From contig RDEW01000023.1 in the NCBI GenBank assembly GCA_011109175.1, positions 86,257 through 150,256 of the forward strand: a stretch of 64,000 bases of DNA. The letters are read 5' to 3'. This document shows, one piece after another, positions 5,686-59,515 of the stretch. Both the position numbers and the translations under genes were made by a program. The DNA comes from Dicyema japonicum. Its lineage: Eukaryota > Animalia > Dicyemida. The notes beneath the pieces are model-generated. The model was not told where the DNA came from, searched no databases, and saw nothing but the letters and a program-made list of their open reading frames with translations. Each line of letters opens with the position of its first letter. Within the stretch, counting starts at the first letter, position 1.

Positions 5686-5926
5686 AAATTATTCCAAAGA
5701 CAAAGGGTAAAAACAAACTAACAAAGTCCTTCATTCTGACGCGTTCTAGTGATTCCAGAACTCGTCTCTAGGTAACGAAATTGTCTCCCATGGAATAATA
5801 GTTGAATCATTTTGAACACCAGCTAGGCATTGGGCGTCTCCTTAGTAAGGTGGATACAATGACACCATCAGGGGGAAGGAAGATAAATTTTTAACCAATC
5901 GACCACACCACATGGCTCCACGTGGA
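5686..5926 (-). mobile_element. SINE-like repeat, family B (structured core, tail ending ...gtctttggaataa)
   Basis: Reverse complement aligns over about 240 bp with 27068-27295; tail also present at 21165-21245. Confidence 0.85.
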
Positions 5927-6859
5927 TGAAATAAATTGATAAATTGTTTACGTGGTTTAAAAAATAAAAATTATTATTGTTTATTGCTAGATTATTCAGA
6001 ATTTTCATATTTGAAGGAATTCCAAGTTCACTCATTGTTCTCTACATTGTAAAATAATTTCCAGTCCTCTTGGATCTGTAGGAATCTAAAATAATAATTT
6101 TCCTCGACAAACTCTATAGTAATGTATTTATCATACTTGTCTATTCTACATGAGAGAAACCAGTAGAAAGGATAGTAGGAAGTACTCCACAAGCACAATA
6201 AATTTAGTTTGTAATCATAAAATGATAACTGAAATATTTATGTGGTTTGATAGTTATCTATTGTATAATAATGATAATGGACTGGACACAGGGATCACTT
6301 AATTAGGGTTAATAAAATTAAAAAATAATTCAATTTTGGTGTACTCATTTGAACTTAAAGAATAAAAATTACTATGAAGCATTTTTTCATATTAAACTGT
6401 TTTTTCAATTATTGTTCTACGCAATCAGAAAAACATGAATTTTCGATCCTATCATAGTTGAGGTTTTTTAACATTGAATACATGGAAAATGAAACATTAA
6501 TGTAAATTTTTTAGAAGATTCAGAAAATAGTGAACAAGAATGTAAAAAATAAGACCTTTAGACAAAATGAATATTACAGTTAGATTAATTGTAATAGAGG
6601 GAACTCTCAGCTAATGTTGAGAATGAGATTACTCTATAATTCCTTTAATAAGAAAGTACAAAACAAGTAAAGCAAAGAAAAAGTTAGGAATTAAATATTA
6701 TTTTAATAAACTTAAATACGATTTTGTTCATATAAGGCATTTTTATAAAAATTCTTTGTTCATTGTTCTTCTAAATTATTGATTTTAGTTTTTAAGATTA
6801 GCCACAAAATTCTAAAAAACCAAAAATGGCCGATTTTTGAGAGTCGACTGTATAATAAA

Positions 6860-7304
6860 AATATTGGTAAGCGACTTGTGACACCCAAAGTTTATCAAAT
6901 GTAGAATAATGGACCACCTACATAAAAGTTGATAGGGGATTCTTAATGTTTTTGTTTATCTCCAAATGGAAGAATACAAACCCTTATTTTTTGAATGACT
7001 TGTTCTGCTTTCGTTTGTCAGCACTGAAGACAGAGTTAATTTATAAAATAGTAATGACTTTTCAGAAATCTTCGACTGAGTGGTTAGAATGGACTATTCT
7101 GAGTCATAATAAAAGTGGTAGTAATTGAGAGAGTGCTATTTGTAGAGTGAGGGATTGTAGAGGTATAGTGATTTCAAAATCGAGTGAGACAAAATGAGAT
7201 CTAATCAAAGTTGTATATCTAAGTACATTGGCATACTCTATTTGGTAGATTCTCCCCCTGAGAGTTGTTAACACCGCGGTTGTATTCTCTTTGAAACTAC
7301 GCAT
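6860..7304 (-). pseudogene. Decayed proteasome alpha-5-like fragment
   Basis: EYNRGVN..GRIYQIEYA across frameshifts resembles the PSMA5 N-terminus [21 protein letters not shown]. Downstream similarity is weak. Confidence 0.45.
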
Positions 7305-7896
7305 TTCTAGTATTTAATAGAATATAACTTGAGAATTATGATTGAAATCGCTTTTCTATATAAGACACATCTGCGTCCTATTTAATAGCCTGACTGAGGA
7401 AGAGAACAAACTTGTCAGGCCAGTCAGGGAGATATTCAAATCAGGATGTGTAACTTCCTAGACCAGCAAATGGATGGTTAACAAGAAAAGGGGGTACCGG
7501 AATGAACAGTCCAGGCCAACTGGAGGACTGGAGTACCAATTCCGTAACCTATTGTTTAATTAATTTTTCATTAATTTTTCTACAATTTAGTGAGGGCGGG
7601 TTACTTAACTAATTAAATTAATTATACAAGAACAGAAGAACAAAAGACATTTTTATTTAAAGAATCACCGAAAAAACAAATGAGAGTAGGGGCTGTCAGG
7701 TGATTCCGTCCTCCTTGAAAAGTTGCCTCATTTTTTTCGGTGTTTTTCCCGAGTGCCGACACACTTCCGGTGTGGACGAATGCCTTTTTGGAGGTTTAGA
7801 GGTTTTAGGAAATACAATGATAAAAAATTGCCTTAAACGAAAGAGGTATCAAGGGTGTTTCAGTGATTTCTTCCATATTTGATTTAAGTTTAATGA

Positions 7897-8206
7897 GCCG
7901 CGTGGCGCCATGTGGTGCTGCGTGGTTAATTGATTGAAGTTTTCTACTTGCTTGTCTGTTCCTCCTCTCTCTTCCTATTAGAGTGGCGTCATGTGATCCA
8001 CTTGTCTAGGTGACGCCTAGTGCCAGGTTGGCACGAAAAGGGATCATTTGCTCCTCCCCACTCCACTGGAGGGGTTTCCACAACTGCATGTAATGGACGT
8101 CTTACCTTTTATGCTGATTCCGGATGGACTCTGTAGAAGTGGAAACTGGATACACTTAATTAGTTGTTTACTTTAACTTCTTTCTCGGTGTATCCGGGGT
8201 TAATAA
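7897..8206 (+). mobile_element. SINE-like repeat, family A (hairpin head, structured core, tail ending ccggggttaataa)
   Basis: Reverse-complement copy at 14787-15096; 3' fragment at 31217-31320. Confidence 0.9.
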
Positions 8207-8488
8207 ATTAAATTAAATTCCATATTAACGGAATATTGCTCTCGTGTTATTTTCACTATCACTGAAGGTCCCAGGTGCTTCAGTTCGGGAAAAGAGACGA
8301 CGAGTTATTAATTTTCCTTGGTCACTGAATGCACCCTAAAGTGGTCGAAAATGTTATGTTGGGGGACTTCCTGAATCCACTATGTTATGACTACAAAATT
8401 AAATGAAATTAATTGTAATATAATTTTAGTACCAAATTAATAGGTTTATTAAATAAATAAAATAAATTAATAGATTAGTAACCAAGTA

Positions 8489-9827
8489 ATGTTTGTACAA
8501 TATTTGGACTCTACTCAAGTCGATAATATCAAAAAATACAAGGTGAGTTACAACATATTTGTAGTACAGTGGAGTAGACACCAGTCCTTTCTCAAAATAC
8601 ATTACCCGTCCATTTTGGAGTTGGTTGGTCAGGGTTGGTTTGTTATCATATGTTAGACTTACATTCCTGTTTGGTTATCCCCAAATTTGCTCACCATTTC
8701 CAGTTTGGGGGTACTTATGTTTGCATACTTTGTTATTGACATGTATGACTATAACTTTTGCACGTGCACATACAAATCTGTGTTATTCGTTGCTATTCCT
8801 GCATGGGTTTGGATTATCACGTCAATATGTGTATTTTTATCCCACACTCTTGGTCTACCTTGTATAAGGACATATAGATGGAACTGACGGAATGCAGGCG
8901 AGGAAGCTTGGGATTACCTCCCCAATGGGGGAACTACTTGATCATGGATGTGATAGCTTCTCTGCCTATTTAATCTCAGTCTTTATATTTTCCTCTCTCT
9001 ATTCGTGTGGGCCTGGAGGAATTGGCATTCTTAGGGTTGTTGTTAATATTGGGAGTATTCTTACCCTATTCTATATCTCACATTGGGAGAAATACATTAC
9101 AGGAACTCTTTTCCTTCCATGGGGTTACGATCCAATGTTCGTGGTTGTTATGCCTTACTATTTCAGTTTATTTCTCTTTTTATGCTTTTCATGCCCTTAT
9201 TACAACCTATTCCTATGTTTACTCCATTCATTTGGGGGTTCTCTATTTTGGATACTTTAGAGTTGGTCTACCAGTGTTGTAATGTGTCATTTACGTTTAG
9301 TTTGTGTGTGGGGTATCTCAACGCCTGTTTGTATAATGAACATATACAAATCGTACTCTGAAGGGACTGGGAAGATGAAACCCTTCTGGAGGCCATTCGA
9401 CCAGTTTGGGTCATTATCTCCTTTAATATTATATTTTATATTTTTTTGTCTTTTGAGTCTCCATTCCGTAATCCAAAGTACGTCATATGGCTGTATGGAA
9501 TTGTATCCTCCAATATTGCTGTCATATTGCTTGTGATTTGTAGTGTCGTCTGATTGTAGCACAAATGACTGATTCTCAGTCTCCCATATTCAATCTCTTC
9601 TTCGTCCCAATCATCTCATTCGTTGGTGTTCTTGTATTATACCATTCTCTCTTAGTATCATCACTATTGGTGGAGAACATATTTTTGGTTATGGTCTGGG
9701 TTATCTCTATTTTACATGTACATTACTTTGTAAGTGTGGTTTTAATTTGCCTGATCCATAGATTTACCAATTATGCCATGTACTCAATATTCAATTTTCA
9801 AAGTTCCCAATAATATTATTATTCTAA
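8489..9827 (+). CDS. SELENOI: Ethanolaminephosphotransferase 1 (EPT1/SELENOI-like CDP-alcohol phosphotransferase), micro-introns, one apparent 1-nt deletion
   Basis: KYKYSGVD, WLSPNLLT, DGTDGMQAR..GELLDHGCD and SHWEKYITGTLFLPWGYD (EPT1-type). A -1 frame change near 9385 is needed to reach EAIRP..GIVSSNIA|CRLIVAQM. The 3' end is uncertain. Confidence 0.88.
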
Positions 9828-9942
9828 CACAATAAAGTCATCTTTTTTGTTTTTAAGGACTAATCGTCCAGACCCCGTTGAGATAACATTTGGGAAAACT
9901 GATAGTCAAAATAATTAACAAAAATAGAGATTAATAAATAGG

Positions 9943-11280
9943 TTAAGGTTTAGTCAAAATAATATCCATGTATTCAATCACACGTGGGTCATGCAGAATA
10001 TCCCTATGACCAGTATTCGAGAACTCTTTTACTTCCGCCCATGGATGTTTTCTCCCACACTCCCTCAGACTTGATATTCTCACAGTTCCATCCCCATCCA
10101 CGTACCCAATCTTTGGGGACGACGGAAACTTCTCCCATGTGTCATATCTGGTTCATAAACCCCCTAACCTGAAGGAATCAATCGTCTGGACCCCCCGCGA
10201 GTAAATACAGTAAAGTTCGACATCTTCAGGAACACGGAGACCAACCAAAAAGTCTTTGTACATCTCCCACATTTCCAACATATCCCCGACATCCCCACCA
10301 AGTCTCTTACATCACGGAAACTCTTACTTTTACGATTAAGTCTAAATCACGAAGACTGTAGTCCACTCCCTCCACCCAAACAGGACTCCCTGAGGTAGGG
10401 AGTAGGGCGAACGAACTGGGAAAGGTGCGTATGGTATCACGAAAAATAGGACTCTCATCCAAGTGCACATTAAAATCAACGCCCACGAGGATGCCGGCCA
10501 GGCTTATTATGGAGCCATTATAAGGCCCGGAAACGCTAATAAACCGTTTGATGTATTTTTCCCGCCACAAAAGAGGCCGAGATTGCAGAAAGTGAGTCGT
10601 AACCAAGCAACCATAACTGTGGGCTAGGAGAGTCACAGGAATGCCAGAAATTTCGAACCTCTGCTCAATCAGAGTCAGCAGGTCCTCAAACAAGGTCCCA
10701 AAGTCGTCTACTTTAGAAATCAACCCAACTGAGGCCCATTCGGAAGTCAAATGGGATGCCGAAAAGGTTCTCGTTTCTCTTGTACGGAAGGGCAGACGAT
10801 TTAGAAGTCAGATGGGAGATAATACTGGAGAAATACCCGGTGAACTTGGAAACTATGTATTAAGAAGACAAATAACTAGGATATGAGTCGTCGAGGTGCT
10901 CAACGGACGACGGATCCCCGAAGGACCGGTTTTCACACTCACTCCGGTTTGGTTTACCGGGGACGAGTCTATCCAACGAAGTCTTGAATTATATACGACC
11001 TCACCTCAGATTGTAGTGGTAGCAGTAATCAAAAATAGGTAAAAAGTCGTAGGGGGAGACCCACAATAGATAATAATCACTGGTTTGGGACTCGCAAAAT
11101 GGGTAGGGTTTAAAGGTTCTGTTCAGTTTCGAATATAGCTTTGATCCTCCGTCACCAGGGACTAAAATTAAAAGTTATTTTACTTAGAAATAAAGGAGAG
11201 AATTTTTGAGGCGAAGATTTAAAAAATAAATGTAGTGCGAATAAATTTATGAGTGCTGCCACGCCCAAAGACAATAGAAC
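9943..11280 (-). CDS. LCAT / lysosomal phospholipase A2 (PLA2G15)-like acyltransferase
   Basis: PGDGGSKL, FGD.SSVEHLD, GIPFDFR, LLAHSYG lipase motif, LYCIYSRGVQT, DGDGTV, HRDIL. Introns 21-24 nt. Two apparent 1-nt deletions (about 10925 and 10327); start codon unresolved. Confidence 0.88.
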
Positions 11281-11374
11281 ATTTTAAATTTTTAAATTAA
11301 CTAATATTTATTAAAAATTTAAAATAATTATTTATTAAAATTTAATTTTGATTGATTAAATTAATTAGTCGGAC

Positions 11375-12750
11375 TACTCCACACAGCCCGCGGCCGAATT
11401 GGACTATATTGAGGAATACCATCACTGACAATCAATTGGGAACACGAAGAATGTGTCAAGGGGTTAAAGAACAGGCAATAATAAACCAGTGCATCAACCA
11501 GAAGAACGAGAATAATTTGGCCACAATGTGGAAATATGTTAAAAAGGCCTTCCATTCAGTAGATCATGACTTTTGTATTGGGTACTCGATAACTCTGCAC
11601 TCCCTTAATGAATTGTGGAATTCGTGAAAACATGATCTCGAAATGGAATTTTAATAACAAAGAAATTGGGGAAATTAAAATAAAGAGAGGGATGCTGCAC
11701 AGTGACTCTGATACCGCAGATCTTCATGCTTGTACCTTCTGAGCAGGATAATAAATGAGAAATAAATGGTTACAACCACGATCCCCTAGTTATGCAACAA
11801 CCACCTGCTGTTTTGGACGACCTGAAAATATTGTCTCGATAAGAAAACATAACGATTATGATGGAGATTAATTATTTCTTTCAAGTCCCTGGAATTTAAA
11901 GAAATGTCTAAAAATCTGTTACTAATGTGCTCACGCTGTGTCTGAAGCTAATTGCTCGACGGAATATGGATATCTTGGTGTGTTAGAGGATAGAAAAAGC
12001 AACGTCTTGAAAAGCCAAGCATTGAAGATAATATTTGATGGGGATAAAAAGAGGACAGTCTGACAAAAACAAGATTAAAGTAACATGTTCAAAGCCATGA
12101 ATGAACACGTGTTATCATTGTATAATTATTACATTGGGCTCATTAATATAGAACCTTGAGAATTTGAGATGATCCACCAAACATAAGGAATATTCTTGTA
12201 CAGAATCGCATTCATTTAAAACCTGGAAACAAGGATAGACTCTATCTGCCAAAAGATTAGCTTGAAAGAGGATTGGTATCATTACCCATAAAAGTGAACG
12301 GATGCTTTTACAATTTTTCCTAGACCTGGAAAAGTCGAATTATTGTTTGGGAAAAACAGGGATTCTACATAAAATCAAAGAAAACACATTTGGCCACAAT
12401 CGTAGAATTCCTCAAGGTGAAGTGGGAACTATGTACGACGATGAGAAGGAGAACAAGAAGTTATCCCTACCAACATAAATATTGATTGGCCACACCAGAA
12501 GGTTTGAGGGAAACTGATATCGATATGGGAATGGTTGACGAAGGATGTGCAATGAGGAAATTCAGACCACTATACAAAGGGAAAATAGAAATGATTTATG
12601 CGGACAATGTCGACCATATTTCCGAAGACTTTTGGAACATCTATTATAAAAAGCACCTAGATACATGGGAAATGGTTTCTTACTATAGAGACAAAACATA
12701 ATGAACAACATTCTCAAAGAGAAACGGCGATACATTAAAAAACTCTGTTT
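11375..12750 (+). mobile_element. Decayed R4-like (REL-endonuclease) non-LTR retrotransposon
   Basis: NQLGTRRMCQGVKEQAIIN, KKAFHSVDH, IKRGML, RLYLPK..RGL. Same family as 15430-16310. Confidence 0.8.
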
Positions 12751-12981
12751 CCTTCAATGAGAAATTGAGGATATTAAATCTTGGCTAATAAGACTATGCA
12801 TAACTAAAGAATTTATGGCTTAAAGTCCTATAAAGTGGAAGGCATAGAGTAAAATTGCAAAAAATCCTTCAAAAGGACTTGAAAACGTAAAAAGAGAATT
12901 GAAATCCACGGATGATCTGGACTCATTAAGAACTACAATTAATATTAGAAGTGTGTGAAGATTAACAATTGCACATGCGAG

Positions 12982-13182
12982 CAGGGGCGTACCAAAACTT
13001 TTTGCTGCCAGGATAATGCGATCAAATATAAACTTGGCTGCTTTGACAATAAAGACCTCAAATATGTATCTTTTTAACTTTGAAAAAGAACGTTCACAAA
13101 TAACATTTGAGTAGTCAGTCTTAAACACGGTACTGTTGCCCAAGACATTAATGTAATGTTGAATTTCTCGAACTGGTACCAA
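12982..13182 (-). mobile_element. hAT transposon 3' remnant with TIR
   Basis: CERSFSKLK dimerisation motif. Terminal caggggcgtac (12982-12992) matches the TIR at 32643-32653. Further hAT-like scraps at 13260-13400 (+) and about 14480-14520 (-). Confidence 0.7.
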
Positions 13183-14786
13183 TGCACGATGCTACTGCGA
13201 GTAAAGATATCTTTGTAGAACTACTACAAATTCTCTTTGACTAGGGGTTTTATTTGATAATACTTGTATGTTTATACACCGATAATGGTTGGGAGATATG
13301 CTGGTGTTGCTGCCAAATTGCGAGCTGAAATAGAAAAGTTAAATCCTGAGTCATCATTTATCACTTTCATTGTATTATCAATCTATTATAAATGTGGCCC
13401 TCGAAGCGAAATAAGTTTGACACCTCTGGTTTAGAACATTGTTTACTTCTCATCAAGCGATTATAATTCGATTCTCTTAGTAATGGCTATAGGACTAATG
13501 CTTAGTTACCGTTCTGAGATTTATTTAATCTTAGAAAAGGATTTATTTTAATTCGACCATAAAGACAACTGGTCTACTATGTGAGCAAAAGATCTTATGG
13601 GACAACTCATCTTTTATATAAGGAGAGGAAATTCTTCACTGAGAAACCACCTGCGTAGACTGATTCTTCCCTTCCAACACGGCTATTCACATGGGATAGC
13701 GCTTTGAAGACAGTTCTCCCTCAAACTAATTTGGGTATAAAACCTCGGGGTTGATTAGCGCAATTCCCTCGTTCTCTTACAAGATATAGGATCATTATTA
13801 ACCAGAAAAGAGACAGTCGTGAAAAGGAATGGCTAATAGTGCAAATTCACTACTTGGTTATGGCATCATAAGTAGTTACTGTTTAACATTTTACCACACT
13901 TTATGACTAGGCAATCACTTTTTTAACCTTAAAATTAAAAAATTTAACATTTTCAATTTAAACAATAAAAGACAACTTTTGTTTTAAAGACTATTTATTG
14001 AAAATAGACATTACGTAATTTTCCAGATTTAGTGTACAAAAGTTTCTGTTTGTCCTCAAAAAAACTCTTGAATTGCGAAAAACATCTTTCGACAGATACC
14101 GAGGATGGCTGACAATATAGATGGAACGAATACATTTTTACATTTCATATTAATAATTTTAGTTAGGTCGCTTTCCAAACTTCTCTTCTACAAATATTTT
14201 TTGACCCTTGTTTCATCTTTCCCAAAATCTATTGCACTAAGCGTCGAATATGCGTACTCTATTATACACTAGTTACTTTCAAATTGTAATATTTTTCTGT
14301 GATAATTTACTATATAAGAACAACCTGGAATATGTGAATAGTTATGCGAAATGGCGCATAAGCTCTACTATTTTTTCACTTTTCAATGCATTCTTCGTAG
14401 AACTACTAAAGTACCTTCGTCCTCAATTAACTCAGAAATGTTAATCACTAGGATTAAATTTTTTGATTAAAAAGATGCAGCCTTCAACCTGGTACCCCAT
14501 CTCGTCAATACGACTTTGGGAGGAAATTGTTTTTCGGAAAACAAAAATTTTATTCAACATCATTTACATTCTGAAAGGGGTGAATTACCCAATCTGGAAC
14601 TTTGAGTTAACATAAATCTTTGAAAAGTCCCTTCATATCTTGTTCAAGAGTGATCAAATGTTCAATATAAATTTCAAAATCATTTTCAGAAAAGAAGTTT
14701 TTAAGACCACTGAGACGTGGAAATTGGATTAATTCTTTCCTGCCAATATTCCTACAAAATAAAGGTATTTTCGAAATTTTAATTTT

Positions 14787-15096
14787 TTATTAACCCCGGA
14801 TACACGGAGATAGAAAGTTAAAGTAAACAACTAATTAAGTGTATCCTGTTTCCACTTCTACAGAGTCCACCCGGAATCAACATAAAGGGCAAAAGACGTC
14901 CATACTTGCAGTAGTGGAAGCCCCTTCCAGTAGAGTGAGGGAGAGCAAATGATCTTTTTTCGTGCCGGCTTGATACTCGGCGCCACCTAGACAGGTGGAT
15001 CACATGACGCCACTCTAATAGGAAAAGAGAGGAGGAACAGACGAACAAACAGAAACTTCAACCAATTAGCCACGAAGCACCACATGGCGCCACGCG
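14787..15096 (-). mobile_element. SINE-like repeat, family A
   Basis: Reverse complement of 7897-8206. Confidence 0.9.
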
Positions 15097-15429
15097 TTTC
15101 GAAATAAAAGTAGAAATAAGTGACTTTTCCTAAATTAATTTAAAAAAATAATACCTTGATTAAATTAATATCAGAAAATTGTAATTTCAACATAATAAAC
15201 AGAAAGGTCGTCTTTCATCACTAGGAAATGTGATGAAACCATATTTTAAATATTTTAGAGTCCAGTGGGCTGTCCTCACGGCATGCCAGTTCTACAAGTT
15301 GGGAGGTAGCAGAGGCGTAATCTTCATCGTATACCTTCATACCATGCTTATGTTCAATGAGCATACTTTCGAGCGTTCTCTTCAGTACAACCGATTGGAT
15401 GCAAGTCCTCGTTGATTCTTCAATAAATC

Positions 15430-16310: not shown

Positions 16311-16399
16311 AAGTTATATGACTCATCGCATCCACTCGCCTTTCAAATAGTAAAATAATAATTTGTTGAAATAATTAAAAAAAAGGTACGTAATAAAAT

Positions 16400-21396: not shown

Positions 21397-22565
21397 ATGG
21401 ATTTGGTAGCTGCTTTGAAGAATCGTGTTAAATCTTACAAAAACGACGATTTTTACGGAAAGTTTAACCACTATTATGGAGTCACACTACTCGCCTTAAT
21501 ATCCGTGATCATCTCCACGAAAAACTTGGTGGGAGACCCAATCCACTGCTGGTGCCCAATACACTTTACGAGTAATTAAATTTTGTCATTTTCAGGCGAT
21601 ATGGTGAGATATGCAGAACAGTCTTGTTTTACTGGGGGAAGGTTTTACTTCAACTCGGCTGTAAAGGAAGACAACTTGGAATCTGTTATATCGGGGAAGT
21701 TTTTCCATTGGATGATTTTGATTACCATACTTCTTGCCTTACTGTATCGACTGCCGTATATTCTTTGGTGTCGCACGTGTTCAGTCAGCGACATTAATGT
21801 TAACCAAATTATTGAATTATCAATAAAATGTGGAGATGTTGATTCTGAACAGAAAAAATCAAAAGCATTCAACATTTTATTCGAGTATTTTGCAAAATAT
21901 AGAAACTCAAGAATGGAGATGGATTTCGAGGGACTTGCAAAAAATAAAATTATAAAATTTATTTATGTCCAGTCAAGAAAATTTAATTCAATTTCATCAA
22001 TGTATATTCTGGTAAAATTCATGTACTTTGTAATCACGTTGTCTCAGATTGTCATTATAGAATATTTTGTTATATGGAAGACAAAAAGCAGTTTCAGTGA
22101 AGTTATGTTTTGGGATTTCATTAAAGTCATTAAGAATGTGGAAACAACGTTTTTTCCTCGATCTGTTTTGTGTAAATTTGACTCCAAGGAATTGGGTCAC
22201 ATTGAGACTCCTCGAACGCACACAGTTGAGTGCATTCTCCCTATAAATCAATATGCACATATTCTCTTTACTGTGTATTGGTTTTATCTCCTCTTTGGGG
22301 GTATAATCAACTTTATTGGAATTTCGAAGTGGATCTGGTACCTCTGGTTCAGATGTGTCCACCAGGGATACCTGATTTCACTTCTGGTGGAAAAGAACTC
22401 CATTTTCATAAGAAATTTTTTATTAATTCTTATTTGAGTTACGACGGCATTTTTGTTATTCGATTGGTGGCGGACAACACAAGTGATCTTTTTGTCAAGA
22501 AACTGGTCTCCAAATTGTTCGATAAATACATGGAGTCCGCCCAGACATATAATTTTAAATGTTGA
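21397..22565 (+). CDS. Innexin (gap-junction protein)
   Basis: DDF..KFNHYY, GDPIHCWCPIHFTS|DMVRYAEQSC, FPRSVLCKF, CILPINQ, YLSYDGIFVIRL..NT. 24-nt intron at 21572-21595; a second junction near 22387-22412 is either a 26-nt intron or a 1-nt deletion. Confidence 0.95.
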
Positions 22566-24365: not shown

Positions 24366-25511
24366 CTAATAATTATTATTCCTGGAATCCATCAATACAG
24401 TATGAAGGATTACATCAACCACTGCATAAGGGTCACAATTTGCGGCAGGACGTCTGTCTTCCAAATATCCGCAACCCTTTTCGTCTACTTCCATAGGGAC
24501 TCTTATGGAAGCCTTCCTATTGGCGACTCCGAAGGAAAAATGATCGTAGCTGCTTGTCTCACAGGTACCAATTAGTCTTTTATAGTTATCCTTTCCCCCA
24601 TTTCCGTCGTATACTTCCATGTGAATGCTATGATTCTTCTCCATCTTTCTTATTGCCGCATATATGTGGTTGATACCATTTTCTTGGCGCATCAAATTTG
24701 TGCTAAAATTCACGTGCGCACCAGCTCCATTCCACGGGCCTTCAACTGGTTTTGGGTTTAATGTGGCAATCACTCCAAAGTCTTCACAAACTCGTTGGAG
24801 AATAAACCGAGCCATCCAAAGATGGTCACCGATTTCGATCCCGCCACATACTCCAATCTGAAATTCCCACTGTGAAGGCATAACTTCTGCGTTTGTTCCG
24901 CAGATTTTGATCCCTGCATAAAGACAAGCCTTATAATGGGCCTCCACAATCTCCCTACCAAAGGAACGATCAGCTCCGACACTGCAGTAGTAGGGACCTG
25001 AAAATTTAGAATCCTTTCCACCTTGGGGCAGTGGAAAACCATTTTCAGGCCACTGATAAGGACGTCCATTGACTCCCATTAATGTATACTCCTGCTCTAT
25101 GCCAAAATAGGGCTCGTAAGATTTACAAAATTCTGTGGTTTTTAAACATTTGTTTCGTAAATTGGATTCTATTAGTAAATTATATAAAATGACTTGTGGG
25201 TTCCAAATTTGGATAATAAGTTTCACAGAGGACCAATATATTGCAAGGAGGCAAAAAGGGATCTTTAAAAATAGCGACTGGTTTTATGTAAACGTCAGAA
25301 TTTGAACACGTTGATTGTCCTGTGCTGGAACCATCAAAATTCCAGATCGGAAGTTCTTGGGGGACTTGACTTGAAAGTCAATAGTCCGAGACTTTGATCT
25401 GAGGTTGTTCTCAGCGTCAATCCAAATGTAGGTGGCTATAATTTGGTTTTCTGGCTGATGAAGTCGCGAGTACTTCTCCCAAACCGAGACTTTGCTGCCT
25501 ACCTTATCCAT
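24366..25511 (-). CDS. GLUL: Glutamine synthetase (type II)
   Basis: [88 protein letters not shown]. 25-nt and 24-nt introns; 1-nt deficit at about 25360. Confidence 0.97.
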
Positions 25512-27067: not shown

Positions 27068-27295
27068 ACGCGTGGCTCCATGTGGTTCTACGTGGATATT
27101 TGTCAAAATTATTTTCCTTCCTTCCGATGGCGTCAATGGATCCACCTTACTGATGAGGCGCCCAATGCCTGGTCGGCATCAATAGGATCCAACAATTCTT
27201 CCCCGGGGACAACGTCGTTACCTGAAGACAAGTTCTGGAACGAGTCTGGATCAATGAGTTAGTTAGTTTGGTTACCCTTTGTCTTTGGAATTTAA
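27068..27295 (+). mobile_element. SINE-like repeat, family B
   Basis: Aligns to the reverse complement of 5686-5926; shares head and core with family A. Confidence 0.85.
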
Positions 27296-33072: not shown

Positions 33073-33436
33073 TTTAATAACTCCAGGTTAACAATCTTTG
33101 GAAAGTCCAACTTTAATAACTAATTAATACAAGGAAGTAACCCGACGAAGAATATCTGCCGACCAAATACATCCTCCAATACTCCATTACAGGACTCGGA
33201 AGAAAGGTGGAGAAGTAGGTCCATCCTCTTCCATTTTCATCACTCGTCCTATCATCGCGATATCATCTATTCTTAGCAGAAGATAATCTTCACCAATGGA
33301 CATAGTCAGAGAAAAGGTAGGAGAGTCCTTTTCAACAACTGTGTCGCCATAAGGGCTCGTCGCCTCGCGGGTGGGATCGGTTGACGAGAATGGCTAAAAA
33401 GTTCTGATCAAAAGACTGCGTTAAGCTAAGAAGGCC
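33073..33436 (-). mobile_element. tRNA-derived SINE, family C (near full length)
   Basis: Reverse complement aligns to 59130-59515, including the ggccttct..gct.aacg head and gatcccacccg core. Confidence 0.8.
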
Positions 33437-48290: not shown

Positions 48291-48585
48291 TTTAATTCCA
48301 CTTGTATTAGAATTTCTGAAAAAAAACCAGACGAATTGAGACTACATCGATTCATTTTGTTTCTGACTATTACTGTTTCTTCAATATTTTTTAAAGAATT
48401 ATAATTTAAAAACTTTCATGGCAAAATACAGTCCAACCTCTATTTGGGGCGCACCTCCGATGTGGGGCATTTCTACTTCGTTTTGGACGCTTTATAAATT
48501 TTCTACCAAAAGTGTGATAAATCAATTAAATTTAGCACCTCTATTTGGGGATTATTTTTTATTATATAAATTTACTAAAAATTGG

Positions 48586-49290: not shown

Positions 49291-49434
49291 TTGTTTTTTC
49301 TTTTATTAATTTTCGTAGATTGGTCGAATTAAACATATTTCTTTTATTACAAGGACCATGTCTCAAATCCCCACAAAATAGAACATAACAATTTATTAAT
49401 AATTAGTAAAATAAGTAATCAATTATGCTTCTTT

Positions 49435-52400
49435 TTAATCTACACTAACACCTACCATAACCTTATCCCTTCTCTCATCCACCATAACCTCCACATCTAA
49501 TGCCTCCAAATAGTTGGAATAACTCCACTCCATCTTATTTCCTTGCAGTTGGACAGTCTTCCCTGTTTGCTTCGTCTCCTTCACTATTTTTTTGACCTCC
49601 TCCACTGTCTCCCCATCTACCTCCTTGATCTTTGGAGAGACTGTGTTCTTTCTAAACTCTCCAAACTCCGCCCAAATGGTGAGCAGCCATCGAAACACAG
49701 AGAACTACAACATCACACACAGCCTACGTGGGCCTCCCTGAACAAATAAGGGTTCAAGTCCCCCGTTGTGTCAATGATCTTCTCTACTGCAGCCTTCCCC
49801 ACTGCCACCTGTATCTGTGGGGGAATGTGAGAGTTCAAGAAACAGTTTATAATCGAAGTCACCTTGGTCCTCTTCAGGGAATCGTCACACTTTGATAGGA
49901 ACAGTTGCTTTGATGATTTACAGTCACTACCTTGTACTTCTGGACCTCCTCCCAAAACATGAGGTTTGTCTCACAGTTAGATCCCTTTGATCTCAAATAG
50001 ACCCGGAACCGCTCGTAGATCCTCGGGTCCTTCATGGAGGCTCTAAAGTCGAGGATTTCCACAGCACTAGGCTCCGGTTTCAATTCCTTGAATAAACACA
50101 CCTTTAACCGGTGTAATGCTCTTTTTTCCCACCTTTTCTGTCAGGTCCTCAATTTCCTCCTTCTTCATCTTCTCCTCAGCCTTCTCCACTACCACAGCAG
50201 GGACCGGATCCTCTGTTAGGTTCTGCAGGAAAGCAGGGATCCACTTTGAGTTGAGTCTGTTAGCCACGTGAGTCTGCATGATCGAGACTATCTTTGGCGG
50301 TGGGATATCATTCAGCAGCTTAGACCACCCCCCACAGAGAGCCATAGCCTGAGTTACTCAAAGAGGCACCTTGTTCTGCTCCTTCTCGCTGGCAGGAGAG
50401 TTCTCACCAAAGAAATATTTGTTGTTGAGGTACCGTCCTTTGATTTCTATCAGTTTAATGTCGCAGGAAGCCTTGTCCACGTGGGACAGTCTCTTGAAGG
50501 CCTCAATATCCAGCCAGCATTCCAGGTCTATCGAGGCACCGTTCTCCCTTAGGAACTCCTTCAACCGTTCAATCTCCACACTGAGAGTAAGCCTCCACCA
50601 ACCCGTCACTGAGGATTGACTGTATGGTAACTTTGGACTTTTTGGACGTCGCAGCTTTGATTTCCGGATGGAACACTGGCTCCACGTAATCCTTCATCGG
50701 CTCAAATGGGAACAATATCTCCTTCAATTAAAGAGAGAAAAACCTTCTTAACTCTTCCACGTGCCACAAACTCGTTGACAGCTCTCGACTTGGTTTCCAG
50801 TTTAACGGAAATGGTTTTCTGCGGCACCTACAAAAATATATTCCCAATCAATGTATTTAATGCAGCTTTCATGTTTAATTGGACAATCAATGCGCTAATT
50901 ATCACCTTCTTAAGCCTAGTCTTGTCCAACTCGCAGTACTCCACGTGGGTTGGCATCAATTTCGCCAACACGAAAGACTCCACTTTATTAAACAGATTTT
51001 TTGTGTGTCGATCCAAATTGTTATAAATTTCGCGGGATTTTTCGTTCGGAAATCCAAAATAGTTTTGTGCATCTGAGTGGAGACATGTAGCATAAATGTA
51101 CTAAATTCAGTCTCCAGTAAACTTTGGAGTATTTTTCTACCAAATTAACGTCAAAAGGCTCCAAATCAAATAGATTCTTGTAGTCCTCTATTAGGTTCCA
51201 TATTTTGTAACAATTCTTGAGAGTTTCATCCTTCTTGTTCAGCAAGTGATCGTACAAGACGTAACCAGCCAGCTTCTCCAATTTCATGCATCTCCTCACT
51301 TTGTCTAGTATTTCTTCACTTTTTTCCCGCCTCTCCTATAAATAATTTAAAATTCAAATTTGACAGAATCGGCCGACGTGTGAGCATGGGCGTCAAAATA
51401 TACTCTGAACGGCTTGGCCAGCTCGTTCTCGATTTCAATAATATTCTTGTGCAACTCCCTAACGTGATCCCTTCCAATAAGCTGATCCCTTCGCAGGAAC
51501 ATCGGCATCCTTGGATGAAGCGAAATCACACCAGTACGTCAGTAAAGGTTCAATAATCTTGTTTTGGAGTTTCAGAATAGTCTCTCTGTTCCAGTTGGCG
51601 GGGTTGTTGACCTCTTCAAGATGTCGGGGATCGATTGCGTTACTTGACGTAGGCCGAGTGAAAATATCCTGTATTGATTTAGGAAACCTGTATGAACACG
51701 TGAATGTTACTGAATTTGGTCGTGGATGAGTTTTAGTCTGTCAATTTCGCGCCAAAAAGAAAAGAATCTTCCTGCGTTATTGGCTTTGAGAAACTCCTCG
51801 AACATTTCAAGAGATTCAAGCGAATTTATCGTTGTGGTTAACCTTTTTGGTAATAAATTGCTTGCGACCTTTCCTTCTTTTGTTGGGTTTGTTTATATAT
51901 AATCTCGTCGACGTCTTCGAAGGGGTCTTCATAGTGGACTTGCCTCTTTCCTTGCTTAACCTGCAAAATTGGCGATCCTTGGCTTTTATGATCTCCGATT
52001 GGCTGGGTTTCTTGGGTCTTTTCGATCTCTTCGTCAATGTTTGGCGCCCCGTCAGACTCGTTGAGGGAATACTTTGTCCGAGGATCAACCCCTACGGGGG
52101 ACTGGGTTGAAAAGTCCCCCTTCAGCTTATCGTTCGTGAGTGGGTTGAAAGCCAAGAAGCTAATATTTCTGATCTCGTCATCTGACATGCTATTCTGACT
52201 AGTTCGACGACTCGGTTGCACAGTGGCCTCTTCGGACAGTGAGAGCAGGAAGGGAGACAACGCCGATTCCCTCTCTTCTGCTGCCTCTTGAAGCATGGGA
52301 GTTACATAATCGAAGACAATTTGACTAAAGTCAGTGTTCGTTGTGATCTAAGTAAAAATTATGTTTACTTGTGACAGTAAACGTCCAAGTCTGTAGTGCA

Positions 52401-52852
52401 TGTAGTACTCACTTTGTAGGAAATGTCCCAGTCTATTGACTTTGACCCACGTGACTGTTTGGGAACCCAGAAGGATCTATTAGTTAGGATGATCTAAACC
52501 TTGACGTTATAGTTGATCTTAATATCCTCGTCAGTGTCGACAGGTTTCCCTTGGTGCTCTGCCAGGACTTGAGTGCGGATTTGTGATATTAGTTTGTCCC
52601 GATGAGGACTGATAAGCTCAAAGGTGTAGTTGTTGCAGTTGAATTTTATTTGTTTTGGAAAAGTCTATGAGGAGAAAACAAATACTTCAAGGGACAGGAA
52701 TCGATTAAAACAATCTAAGAAAAGCTCATCCGTCGACAGCAGTTTTTCCTAAGAGATTATGATTTATAGTACAAAGTTAGCCTCACTGCACTCAGGAGGA
52801 TCTATTTTTACCGCTATTAGTTTAAATTACTTGACTTTATTATGACTGACAT
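49435..52852 (-). CDS. RGS22: Regulator of G-protein signalling 22-like (multi-RGS-like domains)
   Basis: LSTDELFLDCFNRFLSL, PLLTYW, FLRENGASIDLECWLDIE..YLNNKYFFGENSPAS..CGGWSKLL, IINCFLNSHIPP, PYLFREA, WSYSNYLEAL. Many introns, mostly 20-29 nt; the first exon junction is uncertain. Confidence 0.9.
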
Positions 52853-52885
52853 TAGTTGCCAAGCAATATTAATTTACAAAATATA

Positions 52886-53575
52886 TTAATTTAATTTTAA
52901 TAAATATTCCTCAAGTTTAATTTCCCTAGTACAACAGTTAAATTTATGACGGAAGACCTCAATAAACTCATCTTCGACTTCTCTTACCAGCACAAGTCTC
53001 CCACATTCTTCCGTGAAAGAAGTCGCCTTACTACCTTCTAATCCGCAGGGAGTGATATTATCGAAATATGTCAGATCTGTATTACAGTTTATCCCCAATC
53101 CGTGCATAGTCACGTGGCGAGTTGACCTCACTCCAATCGCCGCAATTTTCTTTCTGTTAACCCAACAGCCGATGTTATCGGTGGTTTCCCCGGTTAAATT
53201 GAATTTTTGGCAAAGTCCAACGGCGGTATCTTCAAGCTTGTGGATGTAGTTTTTCAAGGTCATGTTGAAGTCCCGTAGATTGAGGATAGGGTAGGCCATC
53301 AATTGACCGGGTCCATGGAATGTAATCAGCCCCCCACGGTCAATTTTATGGAAGGAACTAATGCTTCTTAGGTACTCTGCATCCTTAGCATACTGGGAGG
53401 ATCGGTACCCAACTGTGTATGTTGGTTCGTGTTCTGTGAGAAGAAGACAGTTCATATCTTTGGTGGAAGAGATTATTTTATTGAGTATGGTTGAATGGAT
53501 CTTTTTCTGTAACTCCCAAGCAGAGAAATAATTGAGAAATCCAAGTTTTATTACATTGACCGATGGCTTTGACAT
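52886..53575 (-). CDS. LIPT2: Octanoyltransferase (lipoyltransferase 2, LipB-like), intronless
   Basis: LTEHEPTYTVG, DRGGLITFHGPGQLMAYP, KKIAAIGV, TMHGLGINC, ITPCGL. Confidence 0.96.
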   Translation of the reverse strand: MSKPSVNVIKLGFLNYFSAWELQKKIHSTILNKIISSTKDMNCLLLTEHEPTYTVGYRSSQYAKDAEYLRSISSFHKIDRGGLITFHGPGQLMAYPILNLRDFNMTLKNYIHKLEDTAVGLCQKFNLTGETTDNIGCWVNRKKIAAIGVRSTRHVTMHGLGINCNTDLTYFDNITPCGLEGSKATSFTEECGRLVLVREVEDEFIEVFRHKFNCCTREIKLEEYLLKLN

Positions 53576-53734
53576 TAAATTTTAAATTATTTTTAATCAA
53601 AATTTAATTTTTAATTTTGATTAAAAATAAATTGATAAATTAATAATTAACAATCTCCATGTAGTTTATCTGGGGTTATAAAATAATATATTTTGGTTAA
53701 GGTGACCTTTAAATACGATGTCTGGAAAACACGG

Positions 53735-53900
53735 AACTTATGGGCTAGAATTCTCCTCTTGACGTTCAATGTCAGGGGGCTCTCCAGCACCCGGAAAAGA
53801 AGATAACTTTGCCAAGATCTCCTCGGATACAAAGTATTGCTCGGATGTCTTAACAACATGGAGATTTCAGACTAATCTTACTTCCCTGAGGATTCAGGCA
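53735..53900 (+). mobile_element. RTE-like APE N-terminal fragment
   Basis: LLTFNVRGLS..LCQDL. Confidence 0.6.
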
Positions 53901-55339
53901 CTACAGTCCCGTGCAAATGTTACTGCCAGGGTCAAGTAATTCATAAGATAAGCAAAAATGTTACTTTTATTTGATAATTTTTATTATTTTAAAAATGCTT
54001 TTTAAATTTTAGCCAACCTAATCAATTTTTTATTTTTTTATTTCATCCCTTAAAAATGAGATTTTTCCACTTTTTATTTTTTCAGTTCTAGTACCTCCAT
54101 CAATTACTTTGTCTTCATTAATGGACTTTTCTTTTTCCTCGAAACCTCAAGTCATTGAGAGTTTCCAAGCGCTCTTTTAAACTATAGATGACGAGACTGA
54201 TGACGTGTTGGAAGATTCTCTGACCTATTTTGGGACAACATAGAAGTACCAGGATGTGAACAAAAGGATAAACAGTATTATTGAAAAATATGATGATTAC
54301 ATCCAGCAGAATTTTTGACTGCGCTTTCTCATAACCTTTAAGTAAATGTTTTTATCTTTAATTTTATCTCTGAATTTAAAACCAGAATTTTCTGTCGGCC
54401 TAAATCTGTCTGGACACCGAAATTTTAATGATTTGCATTTCTTTTTTGAAAAAATATAATTTTTAGATTTTTTTAATGTGGACTCTCGGAATTAATAATA
54501 TTATTCACTGTTTTTCTTAAAATTCGAATATTAAATAAGAAAATCTGTGAGCGATTGTTTGGCACGATGTAGTATTATTCTCATCTTTGTATCTCAAAAT
54601 TTAGAGTTTTTGGTAGCAATTAAGCCTTGTATAATTGCAACGAGAAACTTTCAAACACATGGTAAAATTTTTAGTTTTAAATTATTATTTAAAAAAATAA
54701 TTGAAAAAGATTAGTAAAAATAAATGTTATGTTTTTTAATAATGTTGGCCAATTAGAGGGACTGTAGTCTCTCCCCATAATTTTGAATAATTATTTTTTA
54801 AAAATTTTATAATTCCATTATCTGATGGTTGAAGAAGAACATTCAATGTTGAATTAATTTGTTTTTCATGTAGCACAGTCAGGAGAATAAGGATTTTTTG
54901 AGTTTTTATTTTTTATTAATTCGACATAACTACGAATTAAAAATATCCTTTGTCATCCAGCATTCTGGGATGATGAGTACGTTGTGATGGATTAAAAATT
55001 TTAAAACATCTGGGATTTCTAAATTTCCTGACTAATAGTGGATTCCATTTTCTCCAACATTGTTGCAGCATAAAACAACAAAATTTTTTCTTTGCTCTGC
55101 TTATAGTAAGATGAATTATCGTTTTCTTTTAGAAATATTTTTTCCGAGTTTTTTCTTCAAAAAAAGACAAGTTTAATCGCAGTTAAAAATATTTTTCTTT
55201 TCATATTTGAATTTTTCATCAAAAAACGACAGTGATCAATGCCACCCTTGAACATGAATTTTAGTGTAAATATCACTAAATTTTGAATAGAAATGATATT
55301 TTAGAAACTAAGAGTGATAAACTCACATGACTGTTGTCC

Positions 55340-55900
55340 ATTCTCCGTGAGTCTCTGTCCTCGATTCCGAAGATTACTATATTTTATGAGCAATCAAATC
55401 AATTTTTAGAACAAAGGCTACATCATGGCTTGCATTTTTTGAGCGCGCGATGGAAGTTACCATTCATGACCGAGAGTCTATTGTTCTGGAAGAGACATCG
55501 TGTCATTCTAGGCTTCCCTCCCACAGTCCTGAAAGCCGTTCGATCAACTTAATGAACGTGTTGAGGTCAAGCACACCAGACGTCTTAACAGAAATTGTCT
55601 GGAAGGCAAACTGATCCCCATTTTTGGAATCTAACAGTACTCGATGCGGACTTTAGAAGATTCGCGTTGAGAAAGTAACTGTGTAAGTTGAATCTCAAGC
55701 AAGAGATCTCCCTCGGCTCATGGTTATATCATTCAACCTTTTGACATCATCTCTGTCAAGTTGCAGTAAGCAAGTACCCTTGCGCCTCTAATAGTCGTCA
55801 TTGCAGTTGAGTTTAGCGTGGAAGGAATTTCTCTCCGTCTGCACGACAGCGCATGTAGCCCCTTACTGTTAACAATCCCACTATCAAAAGAGCAACTCCA
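55340..55900 (-). mobile_element. CRE-like C-terminal remnant
   Basis: GLHALSCRR and decayed REL region similar to 16600-16950. Confidence 0.55.
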
Positions 55901-56169
55901 ACAAGAATAGTATCTCCATCCGACAGGGCACTTTATTGATTTGTTGATAGTTATGACTAAATAGCGATGAATTGTTATTAGCAATGTCCGCGGAACAAAA
56001 CGTTAACTAATTTGCGATTCCACTTTTGCAATGTAAGTCATTTCCATCCTCCCCTGTTTTTCGAAACAACCTTTAGATCATTCAGATCCTATGTTGTTTT
56101 CAGCTTTCTTTCTATGAAAGTGAGTTATTCGGCAACGTCGTTCTTTGTCGATATCGATACGTTGCTTTG

Positions 56170-56625
56170 ATTAACATAGAGAAGTATGATTCCATGGCCT
56201 GATTGGCCGGTGCCATTTCCGAAGCTCTTAGGATATGTCCAGAGAGCTTCCATTTCGCCCAAGTCACTTTATTCCCAATCTGTGTTGTATAGTGATTCTG
56301 TAGAGTTCGTTGTTGGTCATCCGTTTCGCCAGTAGATTCCCAGAAGTCGTAGTTGTTTTATGTGGAAAGAGTTGAGGTTCTCCAGTTCTTTGCTGGTTAG
56401 GTTCCAGGTCCACGCGTTGTAAAATAGAATTGGTTCGATAAAGGAGTTGTACAACCGAATTCGAAAGCGAGTCCCTATGTACTTTCCCGCATCCAGATCG
56501 TCCACAATTTTTTGAAAAAGGCAACCCCTAGAACTTTCCTGTGAATAACGTCCTCCGAGTCTCAGAAGAGAGATCCAACTTTCTTGCTTGTTCTCCACTT
56601 TTCCTCGATTCTCGTCGTGTAACGG
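56170..56625 (-). mobile_element. RTE-like LINE 3' fragment
   Basis: WISLL, RFRIRLYNSFIEPILFYNAWTW, NSFHIKQLR. Confidence 0.8.
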
Positions 56626-57674
56626 GATAGCGATAAATGCATAAGGTTGAAGAATTTTGATTATTTAATTTTATAATCTCCGTAAATTAAGAATCGAACA
56701 ACAATTTGGATTACACAGATTCTATAATTGATCCTCCAGTGATTGTGTATTGTTAGTCTTTAGTGAATAGGCATGTTGCCTGCACACTATTTGTAGTAGA
56801 ATGAATCCTCATCAATCGTTATTTGTCTCGTGGAAGCATATATTCACTAATTCTTTTCATTGCAAAGTTATAATTTCCGTATGCATCCTCGTGTTAAAGA
56901 ATAAAACTTATAAAAGCAACAATTAAGGCTTATTGTTGAGCATTTTTGAAAGAAAACAGAAAACCTATTTGAATTTTATTTTCTAAATCAAGACAATTTA
57001 CTGCGTAACAATAAATAGTTTAGGATGGATTGTAATAAATTTAGGGATAAGCAAACATTTAAAAAAGTAACAGGACTAAAGAATGAGATTTAATATTGCA
57101 AAAAAGCAATCAATGGTAAAAGCGTCACACAATTAACTTTATTACGTACAATTGATTAAACATATTCATAATAAAGTACTTTAACCACCACATTAACTTC
57201 AATTAGAGTCCCCGAATATTTAACAAACAATGTTGAAACCCAATTTTAAATATTTCTTATTCCCAAAAAATCAAATTTTGGATCCCACTAGATTAATCGT
57301 GGAAACCAAACGCATAACATTTTAAACAGACAAACATCGTGCCCAAATCAAGGATACAATAGTGTTACTTAAGATTCTTAGACTTCTCACAGAGTAGTCT
57401 CGCATGGCTGAGGGATAATTCATATACTCTGCTCTTATACTCTCCGTAAAGCCAACATGAACTGTGGAAAATTAAATGTATTGAATGTTATTTCTAGGCG
57501 AGTTGTCTCACATTCCAATAAGGAAATCACTAAACCACAAGTCTTCCCTCATTCTTTAGTATGATCACAGAGTAATCTCACACCCCAATAAAGAAATCAC
57601 AGAACAATATTCGATTCCCTACCTCAAATTAAGGATATCATAATTAAGCATAAGTAACTTCAAGAATTAGTGAG

Positions 57675-58965
57675 TTAATGTATTTTCCTCCTCTTAATAT
57701 CAGTTGGGTCACTCTCACGACGTAGAGATGGAAAATTAAACCTCCGTGACAAATAATCATATCTCATCCTCGATGTAGCCGTCGAACTCGTCCGTGGCGG
57801 AAGCTGAGTCCCAACGTGATTAGTCTCACGATTGGATAACAAAGGAAAATCCACCCCTGGTTCATTCGACCCAAATTCTTCAGATTGACCACGTGGAAGG
57901 TTCGTCTGCACTCTTTGAACTTCCTCCATCTCAATCGACTCAGAAGGACCCAGATCAATCTCAGACGATTCAGCTGGCTCGAACTGAAGGTCATCTACAA
58001 GGTCGTCCAGCTGGTGGGAAGTTGTACCTTCCATTCCGATGTCCTCAGAAAAATCCAATTCACTAGAAAAAGACGGAACTGGACTAGAATCACGGACAAA
58101 TGACGTGGTCCCCCCCTCGAGGCTCATCTCACTCAAATTTGCAGTCCTGGCTGTCTGAAGTCCCTCAGACATCTCAGTCTCTGAAATTCCGCTTGAAACA
58201 CTCGACACGCTGTTTTCTGTGGTTCTTGAAGTTTGATTGAATTGGGCCCATAAAGGAAATCCAGTCGACTGCCCAAAGAAGGTGTCAATGTTCTGACGCA
58301 GAGAAAGTAGGCGGTCATGGAGCAATTGAATGTCCCCCAATTGTTGGTGACTGTAATCGGTTCTCCCCTGTCTGATGTTCTCAATTCGACGCCTTCTCTG
58401 TTCAATGTCTGCGTAGATCACACTCATCATAGTCACGATCCTGTCTTCATTTATAAATCCGTCTTCCCTCGACTTCTTTACACGCTCCTGGTTGAAAGTC
58501 TTCAATAAATCGGGCACGTGGCGTTCTTTAATTATGTCATGGCCATGCACGTGCGTATAGTAGTCTGATAGTTTCCCAATCCAGCAGCAATGGTCCTGGA
58601 GACAACAAACACAGAGACTGTCCAGCTCTGACTTGATCTTCAAGTCCATCTCGAAGGGTCCGTTGTCCCTGCAGACTGGACAACTCAGACTTCCGCGGTT
58701 ATCCGAGACCATCCAGTTGTAAATGCAGCTTTTGCAGTACAAGTGGTTGTTCTGGCATTTGCAGGGGTCACGGAGAACGAGGTAACTAGAAATTAGTAAA
58801 TATGACGTTAATTTATAGAAAATATTGGTCCAACCAGATTGAGCAGCTATATTGATCAGCATAAAAAGAAGATATAGACGGGGTGAAAAAATCCCACATA
58901 TAACCCCCCGATAGAACTTTTACGGGTTCCTCCGCCTGAGTATTTACTTCTTCTGAAATATCCAT
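57675..58965 (-). CDS. TRAF/RNF41/RNF151-type C3HC4 RING protein with long Ser/Glu-rich tail
   Basis: Exon 1 MDISEEV..GGYMWDFF..YSCSIC joined across a 49-nt intron to YLVLRDPCKCQNNHLYCKSC..CPVC..CCWIGKLSDY..H. The provided ORF starts at an internal codon. Confidence 0.85.
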
Positions 58966-59129
58966 GTAACAAACGAAAGCCTAACAATAAACAATTTATT
59001 CAAACAATTCAGTTTACCGATTAAATATTTTAAATTTAAATAATTATATATTAAATTCACTTTTAATTCTTTAAATTCCAGTTTATATGTTTTCCTGAAA
59101 AAAAACAAAATCAGTTAAAATAGTTTCCT

Positions 59130-59515
59130 GGCCTTCTGGCTGAACGTAACGTCTGATGACATCGGATCTGAAGGTTGTAGGTTCGAATCCGAAAGATGGA
59201 GTTTTCAGCGAAGGTCAATTCTCTTCAAACAGATCCCACCCGTGAGGTAACACAATAGGTGAAAAAAATCTTCCTACTTTTTTCCCTGACCAAATCCACT
59301 AGCGAATATGACCATTATGAAAACTCTTCCGCTTAAAAATGAAGTGATGTCATTGAAGGTAGGACGTGTGGTGAAAATGAAAGAGAGTGAACCTACTTAT
59401 CCACCTTTTTTCGGAAGCGGAAGCCCGTAGCAGACTATTGGATTTGGTCGGCACAAGCAGACTTTCTCCCTTGGATTAATTAGTTATGACTGTGTTGGGC
59501 TCACCAAAGAGATAA
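59130..59515 (+). mobile_element. tRNA(Arg-TCG)-derived SINE, family C (full-length copy)
   Basis: Head ggcc..tggctgaacg..cgtctga..catcggatctgaaggttgtaggttcgaatcc has A and B boxes and a tRNA-Arg-like anticodon arm but no proper acceptor stem. Body matches 26701-26912 and 33073-33436. Confidence 0.85.

Follow-up and report, generated by a model that had tools for sequence, protein, structure and literature searches.

A covarying double-pseudoknot RNA module with HDV-like helix order, common to LINE leaders and SINEs of Dicyema japonicum

Self-cleaving ribozymes resembling that of hepatitis delta virus (HDV) are already known from the 5' ends of long interspersed elements (LINEs), and short interspersed elements (SINEs) whose bodies come from the 5' untranslated regions (UTRs) of LINEs are likewise already known. 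SINE bodies derived from the 5' UTRs of RTE and Vingi elements have been described, in a design of head, LINE 5'-UTR piece and tail, and it was argued that a SINE would be truncated if an active 5' ribozyme lay behind its head (Kojima, PMC5786205). Here we describe a 62-nt RNA module with the helix order of the HDV-like ribozymes, carried by both LINEs and SINEs of the dicyemid Dicyema japonicum. The starting point was a 64,000-nt stretch of contig RDEW01000023.1 (the window, GC about 37%), in which all coordinates given below without a locus name are positions; genome-wide candidate counts refer to the assembly of 67,542,437 bases in 377 pieces.

Three of the SINE families of the window, called A, B and C, contain homologous copies of the module, which is a nested double pseudoknot with the order P1-P2-P3-P3'-P1'-P4-P4'-P2'. 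This is the HDV-like helix order, P2 being written as a pseudoknot in the covariation counts, and the LINE versions keep the four helices in other sequences. The pairing is perfect in a copy of family A (copy 1, 7985-8046(+); P1 6/6, P2 6/6, P3 3/3, P4 5/5), the parts of which are the following:

7985..7990, plus strand: 5' strand of P1, GGCGTC, pairing with 8012-8017, with GC/AU covariation at the second pair
7994..7999, plus strand: 5' strand of P2, TGATCC, pairing with 8041-8046; the pseudoknot helix
8001..8010, plus strand: P3 hairpin, CTT/AGG here; family consensus CCU/AGG with a loop of 4-5 nt
8012..8017, plus strand: 3' strand of P1, GACGCC
8020..8034, plus strand: P4 hairpin, GTGCC, 5-nt loop and GGCAC, with GC/AU covariation at the outer pair
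8035..8040, plus strand: J4/2, GAAAAG, purine-rich
8041..8046, plus strand: 3' strand of P2, GGATCA

The elements of the window that carry the module or a relic of it are listed below as copies 1 to 7; bit scores are those of R1, a covariance model that includes P1, P3 and P4 only, P2 being left out.

7898..8200, plus strand: full-length copy of SINE family A (copy 1), with 87 nt of head and leader, the 62-nt module, a body and a tail that terminates in (TAAA)n
14793..15096, minus strand: second copy of family A (copy 2), module 15011-14950, 87.6% identity to copy 1, 85.3 bits
27060..27300, plus strand: copy of SINE family B (copy 3), with an A-type head and an unrelated tail, module 27129-27190, 74.8 bits
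5691..5922, minus strand: older B-like copy (copy 4), module 5866-5804, 74% identity to B, 73 bits
30187..30267, minus strand: C-type module with its pyrimidine leader (copy 5), module 30257-30197, 69.4 bits
33150..33391, minus strand: headless element of family D (copy 6), weak module 33388-33323, 3 nt from the 5' end
59120..59450, plus strand: copy of family E (copy 7), with a tRNA-like head and a D-like body; module broken, P1' and half of P4 being deleted

A first-pass annotation of the window had claimed that the fold recurs in these seven copies. All seven stretches are present at the places it gave, the exception being a one-base offset in copy 4, whose P1 starts at 5866, and for five of them the fold itself holds. 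Besides copy 1, these are copy 2, 15011-14950(-) (P1 6/6 including one U.G, P2 5/6, P4 4/5); copy 3, 27129-27190(+) (P1 6/6 including one U.G, P2 6/6, P4 5/5, and P3 2/3 compared with the CCU/AGG of the family B consensus); copy 4, 5866-5804(-) (P1 6/6, P4 5/5 with two wobbles, P2 4/6); and copy 5, 30257-30197(-) (P1 6/6, P2 6/6, P4 4/5). Copy 6, 33388-33323(-), is probably a weak relative of the module: P1 is paired 6/6, P2 and P3 are weak, the covariance model made from A, B and C gives 8 bits in the expected register, and the stability predicted by nested folding is no greater than that of shuffles (z = +0.12). Copy 7, 59221-59272(+), lacks P1' and the 5' half of P4, is not matched by the covariance model and has no fold. 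The proposed count of four families also needs correction, as A and B have one head, C is part of a swarm of low-copy families whose head is tRNA-like, D is headless and E has a broken module. What stands is that a structured module is common to retroelement families that are otherwise unrelated, their 3' tails having no similarity.

The same annotation held that pairing persists while the sequence changes, and covariation bears this out both on 18 distinct variants and on 102 distinct copies. Among the 18 variants, 81.8% of the cells are paired, a share that falls to 33-45% once the 3' partners are slid; double-change cells number 21, where shuffles give 10.8 +/- 2.6. A search of 291 kb with R1 yielded 88 copies at E < 0.002; the distinct rows of the R1 alignment, with the P2 pairing added afterwards, form the set of 102, in which 87.7% of the cells are paired (34-49% slid) and double-change cells number 87 against 35 +/- 4, with 0/500 shuffles as high. 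P2, although outside the search model, is still 88% paired, with UA 40 and GC 30 at its outer pair. The second pair of P1 alternates between GC and AU, as does the outer pair of P4, and P3 is almost invariant among SINEs (CCU/AGG) and changed in the LINE versions. Consensus pair positions include G.U (a U.G in P1 in 37 copies), which fits RNA pairing on the sense strand, the strand bearing the (TAAA)n tail. Nested-only folding gives modest z values of -0.8 to -2.1 for the modules, the pseudoknots lying outside that model.

A loose descriptor of the topology only gave 41 matches in the AT-rich window, mostly AT-rich chance matches, so topology alone is not significant and the evidence is the covariation. 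The topology-only scan was discarded as evidence; one GC-rich match, 16500-16425(-), sits at the end of a coding stretch.

R1 finds two more distant versions of the module, at L036:1275-1369(-) and L031:3779-3873(-), in which the four helices are intact and the sequences differ: P2 is UGGUCC/GGACUA and UGGUUU/GAACCA, P3 is ACCA/UGGA and ACCAAU/AUUGGU, respectively, and the P4 hairpins are unrelated. The linker ATTTGCT that follows the module is common to these versions and to SINE A. About 30 nt downstream of both modules an open reading frame (ORF) starts, which has weak matches to endonuclease families, below Pfam's own cut-offs. The combination of module, linker and ORF with endonuclease matches indicates that the module derives from a LINE 5' leader: it is the 5' leader of single-ORF LINEs of the APE-RT type (apurinic/apyrimidinic endonuclease and reverse transcriptase) and lies a few bases from their 5' end. 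The L031-type LINE is abundant (549 candidates). The SINEs, for their part, have what is expected of SINEs with a LINE 5'-UTR body, namely target-site duplications, a (TAAA)n tail and a SINE-built model that finds the leaders of APE-encoding elements.

In HDV-like ribozymes P1 usually has 7 bp, with a G1.U wobble next to the cleavage site. P1 of the module has 6 bp, its first pair being G-C in 81 of the 93 lettered copies and G.U in 3; families A, B and C have G1-C, and among the LINE versions only the L036 copy has a G.U first pair. As to P1.1, between L3 and J1/4, the CA of J1/4 has no conserved partner: A and B each have a UG in L3 that could pair with it, at positions that are not homologous, and C-type copies have none. 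L3 measures 4-5 nt in the SINEs when P3 is taken as CCU/AGG. In HDV-like ribozymes J4/2 opens with a catalytic C that purines follow. The sequence here is CAAGA in B, GCAAGA in C and CAUAAAAA in L036; the only C near it in family A is paired, as the last base of P4, and the L031-type LINE has AAGU, with no C. Comparison with the Rfam models gave no HDV, CPEB3 or drz match in the whole window at gathering score or at E <= 10, nor any at E <= 10 in stretches of 131-161 nt around the SINE and LINE modules.

The genomic copies are uncut at P1. For the start-position test, which reads the genomic footprint only, the query ran from a 10-nt leader through P1 to the 3' end (position 11 being the start of P1), and the best 40 copies each of A and B were taken. 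All 40 A copies start at query positions 1-5; 38 of the 40 B copies start at 1-7 and the other two at 13 and 18, so that 0/80 start at P1. The 87-nt head is inside the target-site duplications in 30/30 aligned A copies. LINE copies begin 3-6 nt or 7-19 nt upstream of P1 (two LINE sets) and D copies 3 nt upstream, and a single nucleotide precedes P1 in one B-like copy, L031:2846. A search for RNA runs in which 5' ends could be mapped returned four runs of a single 2019 study, stored as contigs, and none of them recorded as RNA. Since a 3' cleavage product would retain the tail, headless copies would be expected if cutting took place; the absence of P1-starting copies among those compared, together with the retained heads, indicates that the RNA which is reverse-transcribed was uncut at P1. 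This is the outcome that Kojima predicted for the survival of such a SINE (PMC5786205). With the hallmarks mostly missing, no Rfam match and uncut templates, the working self-cleaving ribozyme of the first-pass annotation is unsupported, and for the RNA that propagates it is contradicted by the genomic copies.

We propose that the module is a ribozyme-derived or ribozyme-like structural cis-element of LINE origin that forms the core of abundant SINEs and in which cleavage would be weak or lost (we put the probability at about 0.6). Its source would be the single-ORF APE-RT LINEs of this genome: it would have arisen in their 5' leader, possibly from a true ribozyme, and would have been carried into SINEs consisting of a head, the LINE 5'-UTR piece and an unrelated tail. 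Selection would then have kept the helices in the SINE lineages, with the HDV catalytic hallmarks missing, and the fold may act as a 5' recognition, assembly or stability signal of the LINE machinery that the SINEs have borrowed. Families A and B, despite their common head, differ by two double compensatory changes, the outer pair of P2 being U-A in A and G-C in B, and the outer pair of P4 G-C and A-U, which points to selection on the fold after the SINE arose and hence within SINEs. As SINEs have no coding capacity, these changes are not accounted for by a role in translation, and a recognition, assembly or stability signal would be the most economical account of the fold. A more specific form of the proposal, which we hold only tentatively, is that a former 5' ribozyme has turned into a non-cutting recognition element, which the LINE machinery would require on its template, perhaps to assemble there or to finish the copy at its 5' end, and which may be the obligatory core domain of a SINE superfamily. 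Several points weigh against the proposed cis-element: (i) its present function, whether protein binding, assembly or stability, is one that we infer; (ii) part of the covariation could come from LINEs and predate separate captures by SINEs; (iii) non-canonical HDV-like cores can be active, as L1TcRz cleaves in vitro with a P1.1 of a single base pair and, in one construct, without P2 (PMC3185411), so that by analogy the non-canonical core found here is no proof of inactivity; and (iv) at its start, J4/2 has a C and then an A in families B and C and in the L036 LINE, and family A would have C-G-A-A should the last P4 pair open.

Three other explanations were weighed. A chance array of short palindromes (GGATCC, GACGTC), or an inverted repeat at the DNA level without RNA structure, could be read from the 41 topologies that the loose descriptor finds in the window, from the two helix strands that are restriction-site-like palindromes and from nested-fold z values of only -0.8 to -2.1. 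It is nevertheless extremely improbable and already contradicted by the covariation counts, as the partners co-change non-palindromically (GGAUUC/GAAUCC, UGGUCC/GGACUA, UGGUUU/GAACCA), pairing drops to 34-49% with slid partners and G.U pairs occur at consensus positions. Alternatively, the fold may be useful only in LINEs, for instance in translation initiation or 5' processing, and be a passive passenger of SINEs after several captures of the 5' UTR, the covariation having been made in LINEs. The greatest helix changes do separate LINE from SINE versions, the unrelated tails and the two kinds of head fit repeated recombination, and loss of the module has occurred in certain elements (E at 59221; a copy at L039 that has none). 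Ruminski et al. 2011 (cited in PMC5786205) are also said to have reported that HDV-like folds promote the translation of LINE ORFs, which would count in the same direction. That two double compensatory changes separate the modules of A and B, which have one head, and that the most successful families (A with at least 1877 candidates, B with 774) keep an intact consensus fold, makes a benefit restricted to LINEs rather doubtful.

An active HDV-like self-cleaving ribozyme, cutting just 5' of P1, would separate the body of a SINE from its head, or a LINE RNA from the transcript upstream of it. It would be in line with the correct helix order, with P3' abutting P1', with the purine-rich J4/2 often preceded by C, with the position of the module near the 5' end of LINEs and family D and with the B-like copy at L031:2846 that starts 1 nt before P1; moreover, HDV-like ribozymes are found at the 5' ends of R2, RTE and L1Tc/Ingi and in NARTc (PMC3185411, PMC4035085, PMC3414825), and non-canonical members can be active (PMC3185411). 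The start positions, however, make cleavage unlikely: not one of the 80 best A and B copies begins at P1, the heads are always retained, and LINE and D copies have 3-19 templated bases upstream of P1, while the lone headless copy at L031:2846 is within chance expectation. The core speaks against it as well, with G1-C in A, B and C, a J1/4 CA without a conserved L3 partner, an L3 of 4-5 nt in the SINEs, no J4/2 C in the abundant L031-type LINE and no match in Rfam.

In the genome as a whole the module has roughly 5,000-19,000 copies. Family A is 303 bp long, with boundaries set by aligned copies and target-site duplications of 8-14 bp; the module runs from element position 88, after the head and a pyrimidine-rich leader, and at least 1877 genome candidates have 93-97% identity. 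Family B (774 candidates) has about 30 nt of its head (CGTGGCGCCATGTGGTGC...) in common with A and a tail unrelated to that of A. C is of low copy number (9 candidates), with relatives at L063, L066, L067 and L068, and belongs to a swarm of small related families (L063, L066, L068, L047, L022 and L048). Most families of this swarm have a remnant of a tRNA-like head and, before the module, a leader that ends in AATTCCTAGA; the relative at L067 has the head type of A and B instead. D and E are described from the window copies and match coordinates. In family D (519 candidates) homology begins at 33391 (query position 90) in 30 of the 42 matches listed, which identifies D as an element that has no head and whose 5' end carries the module.

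The head common to A and B (7898-7935(+), 27069-27102(+)) contains CGTGG, CCATGTGG and GCGTGG at a spacing of about 10 bp. It has no match to tRNA, 5S, 7SL or small nuclear RNA models, and it contains a T4 run; ARAGORN found no tRNA in the window. The pyrimidine-rich leader, ending in UAG(A)/GAU, abuts P1 (7960-7984(+), 27105-27128(+), 30258-30285(-)), and its conservation across SINE families with different heads indicates that the conserved unit exceeds the 62-nt fold. A further hairpin lies about 10 nt past the module (8047-8090(+)) with an apparent compensatory change, CUCC/GGAG in A and CUUC/GAAG in L022; it is CUCC/GGAG in the L036 LINE and ACUCC/GGAGU in L048b, and is not present in family B.

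Some junctions of these elements are worth recording. At L039:2591-2749, in an E-like element, the tRNA-like head is joined directly to the 3' part without the module; either the module is dispensable in some headed relatives or that copy has suffered an internal deletion. At L051:1440-1520 and L061:1700-1780 a B copy minus its first ~20 bases directly follows an A-like 3' end and an A/T-rich tail, and both junctions fall at the identical position in B, which could mean that A and B form a chimeric element or that a template switch has recurred. At the 5' junctions of family A (L016, L017, L019, L020, L025 and L026), 12-19 extra, copy-specific bases stand between the upstream target-site duplication and the SINE start, and were either transcribed from a start in the upstream flank of each source copy or added at the 5' junction. 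Two copies of a further LINE have their 5' ends in the window (63416-63530(-) and 1-104(-)); its ORF is headed by a 2A-like GDVKANPGP peptide, and its first bases (AUGKCAU...GUGGCAU around a CUCG/CGAG hairpin) can fold into a different P1/P3-like arrangement. Fragments of host genes are interspersed with the repeats at 21583-22437(+), 24366-25226(-), 52886-53575(-) and 57675-58862(-); they are those of an innexin, a glutamine synthetase, a lipoyl ligase and a RING-finger protein.

The literature argues that a ribozyme and a SINE head should not coexist, as a working ribozyme would cut the head off. In the present SINEs, which number thousands of copies, compensatory change maintains an HDV-shaped fold, and the copies show no cut; this may be a natural case of ribozyme silencing with the fold retained, or of a second, non-catalytic use of the fold. 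The case touches a long-standing question, that of the role of conserved SINE core domains; if the module is indeed a non-cutting recognition element, it would be the first such domain to have a defined fold and a function that can be tested. The module RNAs are short and well defined, and are suited to a direct bench test. The elements also document the repeat biology of a dicyemid; the Dicyema japonicum genome paper (PMC6736024) treats repeats only in bulk.

Among known systems, the HDV-like ribozymes of LINE 5' ends (R2, RTE, L1Tc/Ingi, with L1TcRz in the Pr77 region) have the identical helix order, and the module resembles them in its place in the 5' leader of an APE-RT LINE just before the ORF. 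Just as L1TcRz and its kin are common to non-autonomous derivatives (NARTc, RIME, SIDER and R2 SIDEs), the module is common to LINEs and SINEs (PMC3185411, PMC4035085, PMC3414825). Unlike these ribozymes, it lacks G1.U and a conserved P1.1, its L3 is short and its J4/2 C inconsistent; the elements retain bases upstream of P1, and the SINEs carry the fold behind the head, about 87 nt into the element. The RTE- and Vingi-derived SINEs (PMC5786205) share the design of head, LINE 5'-UTR piece and tail, and also the occurrence of headless 'bipartite' derivatives (here D) beside headed SINEs (here E, A, B and C). They differ in that the piece captured here is a covariation-supported pseudoknot kept across many families, and whereas a 5' ribozyme was expected to be incompatible with a SINE head (PMC5786205), here an HDV-shaped fold sits behind one. 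Like the SINE superfamilies with a central domain (CORE, V, Deu, Ceph and Meta; PMC4824008), the SINEs described here combine one short domain with differing heads and tails. In contrast to those domains, the module is so far known in one genome only, and it has a defined, tertiary-type fold and a traceable origin in LINEs.

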